Of a stretch of 64,000 nucleotides of DNA, positions 3,613-63,672 are shown in pieces. Location: sequence record MK250027.1. One strand, given 5' to 3'. Under the pieces are notes generated by a model. The model was not told where the DNA came from. It searched no databases and was given only the letters and a program-made list of their open reading frames with translations. The position numbers and the translations under genes were made by a program. Every line of letters begins with the position of its first letter. The stretch's first letter is position 1.

Positions 3613-4981
3613 AAACTATTAATATAGAATCACTTATGCATTTATTCTCTGTATTATAATGATCTCTTAATATTAATTTAACTTGTTTTGTATTTACTTC
3701 TCTTGGATATACGAAACATTTGAATTCAATAGGATTTGTTTCATCTATCATGAAATTCTTAAGATTAAGTTTCGCTGGAATTTCTTTTACCTATCCTTTA
3801 TTATCTTCATATGATATTATACAATCAACTTGCGAATTTGCCGTAATAAAATATCCTTTATTTAATACATATACAGTCGATTCATCTACTATACGAGTTT
3901 CTGGATCCGGATACATATAGATTTCAGGATTTGTATATACTGTACATTCTTCTGTATTAGGTACGAGAATATCTATACGTGAAGGATTATCTATAAAATC
4001 TGTTGGTATTCTCCAATGATAGAAATTATGGTTATCTACTGAATCCAATACGAACTATTCGCCTTTTTCATCTTCATATAGAATATCAACTTGAAGAAGA
4101 TCTCTATCTTGATATGAATATTTCCATTCAACTAAAAGGTCCTAACCTGATACCAATATCATATCTTCAAAATCTGTTACCCAATGTAATGGCCCTGTTA
4201 CTTTTTCTGGATGATTTCTATTTACCCATATAGCATAACCATTATTCCTTATAACATTATCTGCTGGACGTTCATTATATCTATCAAATATAGGTTGATA
4301 TGTTTCGCACTATATAGTAAATGGAACTTTAATCATAGTCTCTGATGGAAGTTGTCCAAAAGTATAAGTTCCTCCTGCCGTTGGTTGATATGCGGATTCT
4401 GGAAACCCCACACGAACAGGAACAACAGTTCCTTTATAATTAATATGATATGTTAAATTCTTATAAAAGAATTCTCTATATGCTTGATTAATTTTCATTG
4501 CCTCTGCCATTGTTGAACATCTTATTTCAACATTGAAACTATATGTTAACGGCATAGAATAAAGATAAGATACATAAGATTTAAGTTTACCATTTTCTCT
4601 TTTTGTATACTTACCCATTACAAACCTGTTAGTGATATTTCCCGATTCTATTTGAACACTTGACATTGATAAACGTCCCTAAGGGTATCTATCAAAATTA
4701 CCGTCTATTTTTTGAAGTCCAATATCTGTACATTCATCACTTGTGAAATTTGTATAATTATCTTGGATAAACTTTTCTGAATTTTGATTTGAACCACCAA
4801 AATCATAAAAGAATGGAACACATACATTTTCTATTCCATCTTCTGTATCATCCCATCTTTGCTCGTAATATAATCTTCTGTTAAATACCTTAAGTAATCC
4901 TACCAAAACTGCTCTGTCAAAAATATCTGTTGTATTTCTATTTTCAAAAAGCTATTTAGGAGTTAATTGTGTTTTTGACAT
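3611..4981 (-). CDS. T4 gp15-like tail completion/sheath stabiliser (456 aa, 6 TAG read as Gln)
   Basis: Track ORFs 4679-4906, 4310-4666 and 3791-4048 are in one frame and joined by TAG (4952, 4679, 4310, 4142, 4055, 3791). ATG at 4981, TAA at 3611. Motifs VPFFY, PQGRLSMSS and QCETYQPIFD resemble gp15-like proteins (recognised from memory, no search). Confidence 0.6.
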
Positions 4982-30502: not shown

Positions 30503-30652
30503 TAATAACTAATAAAACATAAAACTCGAAATTTGATACAATATCTCTCCTGCATCGCGTCAAAATCTCTTTACCTTATAGTTATTAGTCTTAATTAAAA
30601 ATAATGTGATACAGAGAGAATTTTATTAAATAATAATTTTCATAAAATAAAA

Positions 30653-30692
30653 AAGAGATTAATAAGTTTTGTTTATTGCTTATTAATCTCTT
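30653..30692 (-). terminator. Intrinsic terminator following the displaced gene tail and TnpB cassette
   Basis: 14-bp inverted repeat AAGAGATTAATAAG/CTTATTAATCTCTT with a T-run on the minus strand. Confidence 0.8.
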
Positions 30693-30717
30693 TACTTTTC
30701 TATTTAATATAATTTCA

Positions 30718-30771
30718 TTAAAACTTCAAACCATGTATCATTTCAAAAACCTTAATCTTATTATTTATGCC
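30718..30771 (-). repeat. Second copy of the last 17 codons plus stop of the UvsY-like gene (GINNKIKVFEMIHGLKF*)
   Basis: 49/54 nt identical to 32063-32116. All 5 differences are synonymous third-position changes. Confidence 0.95.
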
Positions 30772-30920
30772 AATATTTGTGTTTATATACTAATATATAA
30801 ACAATTATTTCTTGTTTCATAGACACTCTACTTTTTAGTATAATCATTAGTAATGATTTAGTCATCCATAGTTGGTATCTCCGCAAGCGTAAATTCGGGT
30901 AAATATACACCTATTATATT
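30752..30920 (-). ncRNA. Putative TnpB omega-RNA (scaffold about 30772-30920; predicted guide from 30771 leftward)
   Basis: Directly 3' of tnpB. Contains CCCGAATTTACGCTTGCGGAGATACCAACTATGGATGAC...CTAAAAAGTAG...ATGAAACAAGAA, which resembles IS200/IS605 right-end sequences, and a perfect 10-bp hairpin at 30780-30803. Boundaries are inferred. Confidence 0.65.
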
Positions 30921-32116
30921 TTAATAATTTATTTGTTTTAATCCTTCTGCTAAAATATTTAATGAAGCATTATAATCTCTATCAATCTCTTTACCACAAT
31001 GTGGACATATCCATTCTCTCTAACTTAATTTTAAATCTTTATAAATATGTCTACAATTATGGCAAGTTTTAGATGAAGGATAGAATCTATTTATTATAAC
31101 CAGCTATTTTCCATACCATCTACATTTATATTCTAACTATTTTCTAAATTCAAATAAAGATAACTCTTGAATAGATTTAGCAAGTTTATGATTAGACATC
31201 ATTCCATTTACATTTAAATCTTCAATACAGATAACTTGATTTTCATTAACTAGTTTTGAAGTGATTTGATGTAAATATGTATTTCTCTAATTTTTTATTT
31301 TCTCATGAACTTTTGCAATTTTAATTCTAACTTTATTCCGATTATTACTTCCTTTCTATTTCTTACTTAACAACCTCTATAATTTCTTTAATTTCTTTTC
31401 TTGATTTCTATAGAAATGTTTATTTTCATATCTATTTCCATTAGAATCAACGATAAAATCTTTTATTCCTAAATCTAAACCTATTACGGTATCTAATTTT
31501 TCTTTTTGTATAATATTATAATCTATTAAAATAAACAAATAATATTTTTCTGTAGAAGTTTTAATAAGCGTAATTGAATGTATTTTATTTTGATTATGAT
31601 TTAAATATATTTCATCTTTTTTAGAACATTTAAATAATATATTCTTTAACTATTTAATTAATGTTATCCTATTACCATTAATTTTCTTCTTTTTAAATTT
31701 AAATATAGTTCTTGTAAATCTACAACTTTGCTTAATATCTTTCTTTGATTTGAATTTAGGATAACCATTATGTAATTTAAAGAAATTATCATATGCTTTA
31801 ATTAAATCCTACATTGATTGCTATAAACACATAGCATATACATCATTTAAAAAAGTATATTCATCTTGTTTTTTTAAATTAGTCAAATATTTACCTAATT
31901 GTGTCCATGATACAACTTGTTTATTCTACTCATACTATGACTTCTTATAATCCAATAATTTATTATATATAAGTCTACAACAACCTAACTGTTTAGAAAT
32001 AAATTCTTTCTAAACATTATCAGGATATATTCGTATTTTAATATATTTTAACATAATATTTTTTAAAATTTTAAACCATGTATCATTTCAAAAACTTTAA
32101 TCTTATTGTTTATACC
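30772..32116 (-). mobile_element. Transposase-less TnpB cassette: gene tail copy + tnpB + omega-RNA scaffold
   Basis: Bounded by the two gene-tail copies. No tnpA is present, and only 8 nt separate the upstream stop from the tnpB ATG. Confidence 0.7.
30921..32054 (-). CDS. tnpB: IS200/IS605-family RNA-guided endonuclease TnpB (377 aa, 12 TAG)
   Basis: Absent from the ORF track because of TAGs. N-terminal KIRIYP...GCCRLIYN, Ruv[12 protein letters not shown], Ruv[11 protein letters not shown], zinc finger CHNC...CPHCG, Ruv[14 protein letters not shown]. All catalytic residues are present. Confidence 0.95.
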
Positions 32117-32593
32117 GTAAATAATATTATCAATAGTTGAGATGGTATCTTTCATATACTTACAGAAATTATCCAATAAATCAACTGATTCTTTTTCTGC
32201 TGATAGTTGAGATTCAATCTGTAAATTAATAGCACTTTCATTCGTATATCTAATTCCAGATGAACCAGATTTTAAAGCTAAATAAATTCCTGATGCTTTA
32301 GACTTATAATCTCTCGTTTGCTTTTGTAATATCTTTGCTGTTCCATAAAATAAGTCTATTGCTTCTTGTCTCTTTAAATAAACTTCATTCATCAAACCAT
32401 CAATAGATTTCAAATCTTTCATTCGTTCATTTAAATTCTTAATAATATCTGTCCACTTATCTTGAAGATTACTCAATGAATTTTCCAATGAATTTTGTTG
32501 TGAATTAACATTATTATTCTGATTAGTTTGTTGAACTTGATTATTATCTATAGAATTATTATTTTCTGTTACTACTTCATTTTCTTTATCCAT
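32063..32593 (-). CDS. UvsY-like recombination mediator protein (176 aa)
   Basis: Helical protein whose C-terminus (KYMKDTISTIDNIIYGINNKIKVFEMIHG) resembles the T4 UvsY-family C-terminal pattern. Recognition is from memory only. Confidence 0.5.
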   Translation of the reverse strand: MDKENEVVTENNNSIDNNQVQQTNQNNNVNSQQNSLENSLSNLQDKWTDIIKNLNERMKDLKSIDGLMNEVYLKRQEAIDLFYGTAKILQKQTRDYKSKASGIYLALKSGSSGIRYTNESAINLQIESQLSAEKESVDLLDNFCKYMKDTISTIDNIIYGINNKIKVFEMIHGLKF

Positions 32594-32944: not shown

Positions 32945-33227
32945 NNNNNNNNNNNNNNNNNNNNNNNNNNNNNNNNNNNNNNNNNNNNNNNNNNNNNNNN
33001 NNNNNNNNNNNNNNNNNNNNNNNNNNNNNNNNNNNNNNNNNNNNNNNNNNNNNNNNNNNNNNNNNNNNNNNNNNNNNNNNNNNNNNNNNNNNNNNNNNNN
33101 NNNNNNNNNNNNNNNNNNNNNNNNNNNNNNNNNNNNNNNNNNNNNNNNNNNNNNNNNNNNNNNNNNNNNNNNNNNNNNNNNNNNNNNNNNNNNNNNNNNN
33201 NNNNNNNNNNNNNNNNNNNNNNNNNNN
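32945..33227. other. Assembly gap (283 N)
   Basis: Run of N in the sequence. Confidence 1.
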
Positions 33228-33263
33228 AGTTTATAACTAATTGAAACTAAATAATTTAGATAT

Positions 33264-63290: not shown

Positions 63291-63381
63291 ACACAGATGT
63301 GCGAGTGGTTGATGCAGTTGGTCTCCAAAACCAATAACGGTATATATGTACTGTTCGAGGGTTCGAATCCTTCTCTGTGTG
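63291..63381 (+). tRNA. tRNA with CCA (Trp) anticodon and a long variable arm
   Basis: Acceptor ACACAGA/TCTGTGT, anticodon arm TTGGT-CTCCAAA-ACCAA, 22-nt variable region with an 8-bp stem, T arm GAGGG-TTCGAAT-CCTTC, G73. No encoded CCA end. Confidence 0.85.
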
Positions 63382-63573
63382 CAAATTAAAAATTTATACA
63401 AATAAAATAAGAATAATATGACAAAGTTAATACGACATATACATAAGCATCGAATACAGTTATAAATTGTTGATCTTATATTATACATTATTATATATAG
63501 GATTGACATAAGAAATCATGTTCCTATATGTTTAATGATATATTGTTGTATTATATTTAGGAACACTCCATAG

Positions 63574-63648
63574 TGGGGTGTAACTCAAAGGTCAGAGTGG
63601 TATTCTTAATAAGAATACTGGTAGTGGGTTCAACTCCCACCACCCCAA
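63574..63648 (+). tRNA. tRNA with an extended anticodon arm (central triplet AAT; identity uncertain)
   Basis: Acceptor TGGGGTG/CACCCCA, D arm ACTC/GAGT, T arm GTGGG-TTCAACT-CCCAC, A73. The anticodon arm GTATTCTTAATAAGAATAC is 2 nt longer than canonical. Confidence 0.75.
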
Positions 63649-63672
63649 CTAAAAATAAATTAAATTAGAAAA

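Follow-up and report, generated by a model that had tools for sequence, protein, structure and literature searches.

A tnpB gene between two copies of a gene tail

The locus described here lies on the minus strand of a 64,000-nucleotide (nt) stretch of DNA from sequence record MK250027.1 (the window, by which we mean the whole stretch analyzed). The window belongs to the Prevotella phage Lak-B, a gut megaphage, and shows 100% identity to Lak-B8. A gene for a protein of 176 amino acids (aa) is followed after 8 nt by tnpB, an omega-RNA scaffold, a further 8 nt, a second copy of the gene's last 54 nt and a terminator-like hairpin. This second tail, which we call the downstream (D) copy, starts about 150 nt past the tnpB stop codon; the tail that ends the intact gene is the upstream (U) copy. 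The architecture and coordinates proposed in the initial annotation, which had been made from the sequence alone, all hold. The parts are as follows:

32593..32063, minus strand: 176-aa megaphage gene (possible distant UvsY relative), an intact open reading frame (ORF) with 0 TAG codons
32117..32121, minus strand: TTTAC directly 5′ of the U copy, the putative target-adjacent motif (TAM) with its last base altered (synonymous Tyr TAT>TAC), from comparison with element-free alleles
32063..32116, minus strand: U copy, the functional last 17 codons plus stop (repeat alignment, allele comparison)
32055..32062, minus strand: 8-nt spacer AAAATATT, whose last ~5 nt match the 3′ tip of the family left end (paralog alignment)
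30921..32054, minus strand: tnpB, 377 aa, 12 TAG codons read as Gln, ISDra2-like (ORF, Pfam, structure alignment)
30772..30920, minus strand: right end and omega-RNA scaffold; the conserved block extends into the 3′ end of tnpB (paralog alignment, folding)
30803..30780, minus strand: perfect 10-bp hairpin (single-sequence fold), followed by an 8-nt linker at 30779..30772
30752..30771, minus strand: predicted guide, the first 20 nt of the D copy, GGCATAAATAATAAGATTAA (right-end boundary mapping)
30718..30771, minus strand: D copy, the displaced, untranslated gene tail, continuous with the native downstream DNA (alignment)
30642..30703, minus strand: AT-rich hairpin (25-nt inverted repeat) and T-run, the gene's native terminator-like element, found likewise after the single tail in element-free alleles

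The AT-rich hairpin and T-run drew no call from a terminator scan, which is GC-biased.

The D copy (30771..30718) and the U copy (32116..32063) are identical at 49 of 54 positions. As stated initially, the differences number five and every one is a third-position synonymous transition; the probability that five random transitions all fall at synonymous positions is ~0.002. A sixth difference appears if the adjoining Tyr codon is counted, which is TAC upstream, has a T before the D copy, and is TAT in all free alleles. The duplication is real: all nine Lak-B genomes (Lak-B1 to Lak-B9) and separate IMG, ENA and Logan assemblies share the same structure, and a diverged version of it is present in another lineage, L115/L116. 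We therefore give practically no credence to a collapsed or chimeric repeat introduced during assembly.

Many alleles of the 176-aa gene were collected by pattern scans and exact-protein look-ups. In distant element-free alleles (65–96% aa identity) the tail occurs once, with the terminator behind it. Among close relatives occupancy is polymorphic: four groups of free alleles at ≥97% aa identity (L117-120, L108-111, L112-114 and L102) stand beside three occupied lineages (Lak-B, L115/L116 and L103). The initial annotation had predicted that element-free alleles would carry the D-type tail followed by the native downstream DNA, and such alleles were found. L117-120 read TAT·GGC ATC AAT ... AAG ... 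TTG AAG TTT TAA (here and below the dot marks the insertion point), with all five downstream-type bases (GGC, AAT, AAG, TTG, AAG), and the 39 bases after the stop are identical to those that follow the D copy in the window. The native tail now lies beyond the right end of the element, and the gene remains whole through the other tail copy, which is fused 8 nt ahead of tnpB. In contigs of two more public runs, position 30763 is joined directly to 32109, so that exactly 1345 nt are absent. We also considered whether L117 could have arisen by simple deletion between the U and D copies. This was rejected, since TAT together with GGC at the extreme 5′ end of the repeat could not result from such a crossover in an allele of the Lak-B type.

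Of the four close free groups, L117, L112 and L108 are more similar to the D copy, and L102 to the U copy. The sequence TT(A/G) AAG TTT TAA ends both observed downstream tails (the L103 contig stops before its own) as well as the tails of three of the four close free groups, the L102 tail ending in CTT AAA TTT TAA. All three occupied upstream tails end in TTA AAA TTT TAA, that is, this ending is linked to tnpB. The U copy had been described as a recoded tail, a description that does not survive the comparison: free alleles themselves carry these variants (GGT/GGC/GGA, AAC/AAT, AAA/AAG and TTA/TTG) as ordinary synonymous polymorphism, and at four of the sites L102 resembles the U copy. Only TAC is exclusive to occupied alleles (Lak-B and L103, two of the three occupied lineages), every free allele having TAT.

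The other occupied lineages differ in detail. In L115/L116 (a 531-kb genome) the left junction and the right-end tip are as in the window, TnpB is 87% identical at the aa level, the displaced tail begins GGT ATT AAC, and the upstream copy retains TAT. In L103 a TnpB with 69% aa identity lies behind a TAC-type tail with a different junction. Just before the tail, at 32120-32165 on the minus strand, Lak-B departs from every other allele at 6–9 of 50 bases, compared with 0–5 differences in most neighboring segments; the synonymous ATC and TAC codons are common to Lak-B and L103 despite tnpB genes at only 69% identity. Farther upstream, a masked run of N occupies window positions ~32945-33230, just upstream of the 176-aa gene and within the neighboring divergent gene.

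The nuclease, its predicted guide and the element family

The tnpB frame is open solely with its 12 TAG codons read as Gln. The protein matches the Pfam families HTH_OrfB_IS605, OrfB_IS605 and Cas12f1-like TNB, and can be aligned over its full length with solved structures of ISDra2 TnpB (E 4e-61). In this alignment the RuvC D/E/D residues (DLG, EDLN and DRD motifs) and the zinc finger are kept. Comparison with paralogs gives a ratio of nonsynonymous to synonymous substitution rates (dN/dS) of 0.08–0.18, that is, purifying selection, and each copy in the family carries 7–17 in-frame TAG codons. Together these two properties indicate that the TnpB family has long been resident in TAG-recoded phages. 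Judging from sequence conservation, TnpB is likely an active nuclease.

In IS605-type elements the omega-RNA guide is templated just outside the right end, as established for ISDra2. We defined the right-end boundary of the Lak family from 13 copies at unrelated sites. The conserved part ends at 30772 and the D copy begins at 30771, in agreement with the family boundary to within 0–1 nt, which supports the earlier proposal that the D copy sits where the guide is taken. Its use in an omega-RNA is predicted from these DNA boundaries. Regions downstream of the paralogs have a common scaffold with a long-range stem and a variable subterminal hairpin, and end in ...AT. The consensus fold of the scaffold (13 copies) has 19 pairs, four of them with compensatory changes, and the long-range stem covaries. 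An Rfam scan of the window copy and three full-length paralogs detected no known omega-RNA, RAGATH or intron family. In an RNA-seq library (run X6) one 151-nt contig matches window 30750-30900 without differences; it runs through the scaffold into the displaced tail, of which it includes the first 22 nt, and no other part of the locus is represented. This contig could be omega-RNA or DNA carry-over and is weak evidence.

The absence of tnpA noted initially was confirmed for the phages: a search for Y1 TnpA (PF01797) across five related phage records, one of them a complete genome of 553 kb, gave no match while the controls were positive, host-encoded TnpA not having been examined.

The element is one of a family. 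In IMG/VR, Lak-like genomes have 23 closely related tnpB loci, which occupy about 11 sites, with several copies per genome. Most Lak paralogs elsewhere encode TnpBs 82–88% identical to that of the window at the aa level, and most of these have a full left end of ~200 nt with a 24-bp covarying hairpin. The window copy retains just ~5–8 nt of it. Thus, the statement that there is no room for a left end applies to this truncated copy and fails for the family. Paralog left ends absent from the window were delineated at L018:2770-3003, L019, L021:2395-2610, L022, L025, L028, L031, L032 and L035, and their 5′ boundary varies between copies. The 24-bp hairpin lies just upstream of the tnpB start and shows compensatory changes in seven pairs. 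On visual inspection, the hairpin loop pairs with a segment farther upstream, which likewise covaries from copy to copy (TTGGCGATTGG / CAATCGCCAA and others). The left-end structure has no match among Rfam families; the hairpin could be a transposase DNA hairpin or a structure of the 5′ untranslated region.

We next turned to the TAM. Empty sites were recovered for six other insertions of the family, and clean junctions read ..AT·G: TTTAT·G at L022, AATAT·G at L032 and L035, AAAAT·G at L028 and GGAAT·G at L021. Free alleles of the 176-aa gene have (T/A)TTAT or TATAT at the TAM position, and all read TAT·GG. Because of this agreement, the TAM more likely ends in TAT than reads TTTAC, the motif originally suggested. 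It follows that the U copy, which was thought to keep the TAM, would instead have lost it by a synonymous change at the last base: it has TAC where every free allele has TAT.

Guides vary from one occupied lineage to another, and each of them matches local alleles without the element. For the Lak-B guide the best free allele is L117-120 (19/20, TAM TATAT), and the match to its own U copy is 18/20, with mismatches at positions 3 and 9 and TTTAC in place of the TAM. For the L115 guide the best free allele is L102 (20/20, TAM TATAT), and its own U copy matches at 19/20, with a mismatch at position 9 and TAT kept. Each guide thus matches its own U copy more poorly than the best free allele. By hand count, 5 of 14 U/D differences fall within the first 10 guide nt compared with ~2.6 expected, which is not significant.

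Target duplications of about 50 nt also flank this element family at three other sites (L021, L022 and L023). At L021 a 51-nt gene tail is present once in empty alleles and twice in occupied ones; one copy ends at a complete left end, the other begins at the right end, and they have four synonymous differences, two of them within the first 7 nt of the guide. At L022 the duplicated 52 nt comprise the promoter region of the downstream gene together with its first nine codons, preserving the gene head. In their inner halves the repeats are identical to the empty allele and in their outer halves they have diverged, a mosaic expected if break repair had copied the cassette between two crossovers inside the repeat. 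L023 has a 46-nt repeat and, as in the window, a truncated left end. The right junctions of L022 and L023 fit poorly with a simple reading of TAM then guide. Duplication is therefore peculiar neither to the 176-aa gene nor to 3′ ends, L021 being another gene tail and L022 a gene head. Beyond these three sites in the same family, a wider search of tnpB loci, as initially proposed, covered 75 more distant phage TnpB loci, none of which has a flanking target duplication. The only long flanking repeat among them, at L150, proved to be a tandem array of paralogous lipoprotein genes.

Other members of the family (L028, L032 and L035) are simple insertions without duplication. At L028:2790-2806, compared with G002 (L099), the insertion swaps the last nine codons of the gene upstream of it (...NYYNN VKNETRDLS*) for ...NYYNNF*. 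Therefore, the element family does truncate gene tails when no duplicate is present. The contrast drawn initially with duplication-free IS200/IS605 insertion accordingly applies to some members (54 nt here, 51–52 nt at L021 and L022), while others insert without duplication at ..AT·G. At four loci (L025:4296, L032:4319, L035:4326 and L020:4302) the right-end AT and the next base G form the ATG start codon of a downstream gene, the ORFs at L025, L032, L035 and L020 being 156, 180, 216 and 48 aa long. Since empty alleles at L032 and L035 show the same ATG, the family inserts inside start codons and rebuilds them. L019 has its element and left flank in common with L020/L034, and ~88 nt of its right flank are deleted exactly from the right-end boundary (from locus position 4302), giving a different guide. 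Two dispersed intergenic repeats, of ~250 nt (L021:1609-1860) and ~90 nt (L018:2158-2249), each have a dozen or more copies per Lak-like genome at 75–96% identity.

As for the target gene, its 43 homologues are all on phage-like contigs. It had been labeled an intact UvsY-like gene. The ORF is indeed intact, and the name finds two weak leads: one of 22 relatives matches PF11056 (UvsY) with E 0.021, and a language-model look-alike search returns UvsY clusters at 0.93. The window protein itself does not match PF11056, belongs to no Pfam or PHROG family, and finds nothing in a profile search of solved structures. It is thus a possible distant relative of UvsY. This gene has 0 TAG codons, compared with 12 in tnpB, 8 nt behind. 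Synthesis of TnpB would therefore have to await the reading of TAG as Gln, despite the proximity of the two genes. The window contains no suppressor tRNA, only tRNA-Trp and tRNA-Ile at 63291-63649.

Proposed homing and its alternatives

How might this arrangement work? We lean, though only just, towards a left-end-truncated, TnpA-less TnpB/omega-RNA cassette of the IS200/IS605 type that acts as a homing element in the 3′ end of a conserved Lak gene. The first ~20 nt of the displaced tail would be transcribed as the guide, and the remainder would serve as right-hand homology. As the left end that precedes tnpB in paralogs is gone, tnpB would be co-transcribed with the 176-aa gene, and translated only where TAG means Gln. 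In a mixed infection, TnpB–omega-RNA would cut the TAT-flanked tails of element-free relatives, and recombinational repair from the occupied genome would copy the cassette in. This would be non-restorative homing, like that of free-standing phage homing endonucleases. The cassette's own U copy would escape through seed mismatches at guide positions 3 and 9 together with TAT>TAC, and the D copy because the right end rather than a TAM precedes it. Cleavage, immunity of the self copies and homing are all inferred here from sequence comparison, and the initial interpretation as a whole is partly supported.

Several observations weigh against this reading. The window guide has no perfect target among the sampled free alleles. 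The U copy of L115 retains TAT and has one mismatch to its own guide; a single seed mismatch would thus have to be protective, or else TnpB leaves this site uncut. The TAM was deduced from about seven sites in AT-rich DNA, and the start of the downstream copy at L022 is not adjacent to a TAT-type motif. The U/D differences are common polymorphisms, with the free allele L102 upstream-like at four sites. Moreover, the TnpBs at this site in the three lineages (87% and 69% aa identity) resemble one another no more than they resemble paralogs at other sites, and sliding-identity and variable-site analysis of occupied versus free genomes found mosaic flanks and no clean conversion tract. Because of these incongruent relationships and mosaic flanks, gain by homing and an ancient insertion followed by recombination are not separated.

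The main rival to homing starts from an accident. An ordinary IS605-type insertion at TAT·GG would have severed the final 17 codons from the gene; illegitimate recombination involving a wild-type genome would then have supplied a complete gene end before tnpB and removed the left end. The duplication would then persist only because repaired gene-disrupting insertions survive, and the D copy would have no guide role in spread. We consider this unlikely, yet it accounts for a good deal: the left end is lost exactly where the duplicate meets tnpB, both in the window and at L023, the different L103 junction suggests independent events, the U/D differences look like two ordinary alleles, the L022 duplication clearly restores an interrupted gene, and at L028 a gene tail is truncated with no duplication. 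It accounts less well for L021, where a complete left end begins exactly at the end of the upstream copy, which is unexpected for a random illegitimate junction, and for the clustering of duplication lengths at 51–54 nt. Nor does it lead one to expect guides that match co-circulating free alleles at 19/20 and 20/20, or a TnpB and scaffold conserved under selection. Such an origin is also compatible with later homing, and is thus partly a sub-case of the homing explanation.

A different role for the same nuclease is that of a weapon between phages, the guide directing cleavage of the same gene in competing Lak strains and lowering their yield (marker exclusion), with no copying required. The guides do match alleles of other lineages better than the cassette's own U copy, the nuclease is intact by sequence, and competitor killing by phage homing endonucleases provides a precedent (PMC13565253). 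The present data do not separate this possibility from homing. We nevertheless rate it as rather improbable, given that a weapon needs only ~20 nt, whereas long downstream homology and a linked upstream tail are what a homing donor needs. Much less probable still is an exapted, TldR-like RNA-guided regulator that binds the tail of its own gene or of a relative's without cutting. The immobile copy, with neither left end nor TnpA, and its operon-like fusion to a phage gene would suit such a role. It is hard to reconcile with the conserved RuvC D/E/D and zinc finger, the catalytic motifs being intact here and RuvC inactivated in TldR-type proteins, with the close identity of this full-length TnpB to Lak paralogs that mostly have full left ends, and with the mismatches between the guide and its own U copy.

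Among known systems, the cassette works most like IS605 TnpB/omega-RNA. Besides the homologous TnpB, it has a scaffold that extends from the 3′ end of tnpB across the right end and includes a subterminal hairpin, a guide position directly outside the right end and an AT-rich motif 5′ of the target, and its Lak paralogs have a structured left end and include simple insertions without duplication. Yet it fails three features that define IS200/IS605-type elements: TnpA (searched for in phage genomes), the left end and duplication-free insertion, its target being imperfectly duplicated over 54 nt. When its own transposon has excised, TnpB is known to bring it back (restorative homing). For the Lak-B cassette the target would, in contrast, be an allele carried by a different genome during mixed infection rather than the vacated donor site on a sister chromosome. 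IStrons, which combine a group I intron with an IS605 TnpB, likewise place a TnpB element inside a gene whose function is kept. In Lak-B it is the duplicated gene end, not splicing, that keeps the function. Consistent with this contrast, which had been drawn initially, Rfam detects no group I intron in the window copy or in full-length paralogs.

Two parallels come from protein homing endonucleases. In fungal mitochondria, mobile endonuclease ORFs accompany carboxy-terminal gene duplications in Allomyces atp6 and in Glomus atp6, atp9, cox2 and nad3 (PMC3630166). The order is the same as in Lak-B: gene body, inserted functional C-terminus, nuclease ORF, displaced native C-terminus downstream. 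As in Lak-B, the two ends are not identical; in the fungi it is the native end that looks like the one in relatives without the element (PMC3630166). Those nucleases are LAGLIDADG or GIY-YIG proteins fused in frame, whereas the Lak-B tnpB is a separate cistron 8 nt downstream, in a phage host, and its product is of an RNA-guided type, so that the displaced end would double as specificity determinant. The free-standing Seg and Mob endonucleases of T-even phages carry out intronless homing with localized marker exclusion (PMC13565253). As in Lak-B, the nuclease gene lies between conserved phage genes; a few substitutions in a nearby conserved gene that mark self versus non-self, and spread via break repair in mixed infection with co-conversion of flanks, are presumed for Lak-B as well. 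In contrast to the Lak-B cassette, these enzymes recognize DNA through protein, need no duplicated target and are not transposon-derived.

More broadly, we tentatively suggest, as a possibility we hold with some doubt, that the TnpB cassettes of Lak phages constitute a naturally occurring gene drive that is guided by RNA, works without a transposase and operates between phages infecting the same cell. A replacement gene end would arrive with the cassette, and the resident end, left behind the right end, would become both guide and homology arm. The guide would then track alleles of the invaded lineages, and the ~50-nt target duplications would be a signature of spread. In the library of papers searched, nothing connects Lak phages with TnpB. 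If homing is correct, the locus would be a natural case of TnpB spreading to other genomes, that is, of non-restorative homing among phages or plasmids that share a host cell, so far only a predicted category (PMC13565253). It shows how a TnpB element can occupy coding sequence without splicing, by duplication of the gene end, and connects RNA-guided nucleases to an architecture known only from the protein homing endonucleases of fungal mitochondria. The locus also has the makings of a test case: a likely active nuclease with neither transposase nor left end, guides that match circulating free alleles, and self copies with seed and TAM changes. Its occupied, empty and self alleles constitute defined substrates for studying cleavage and homing.

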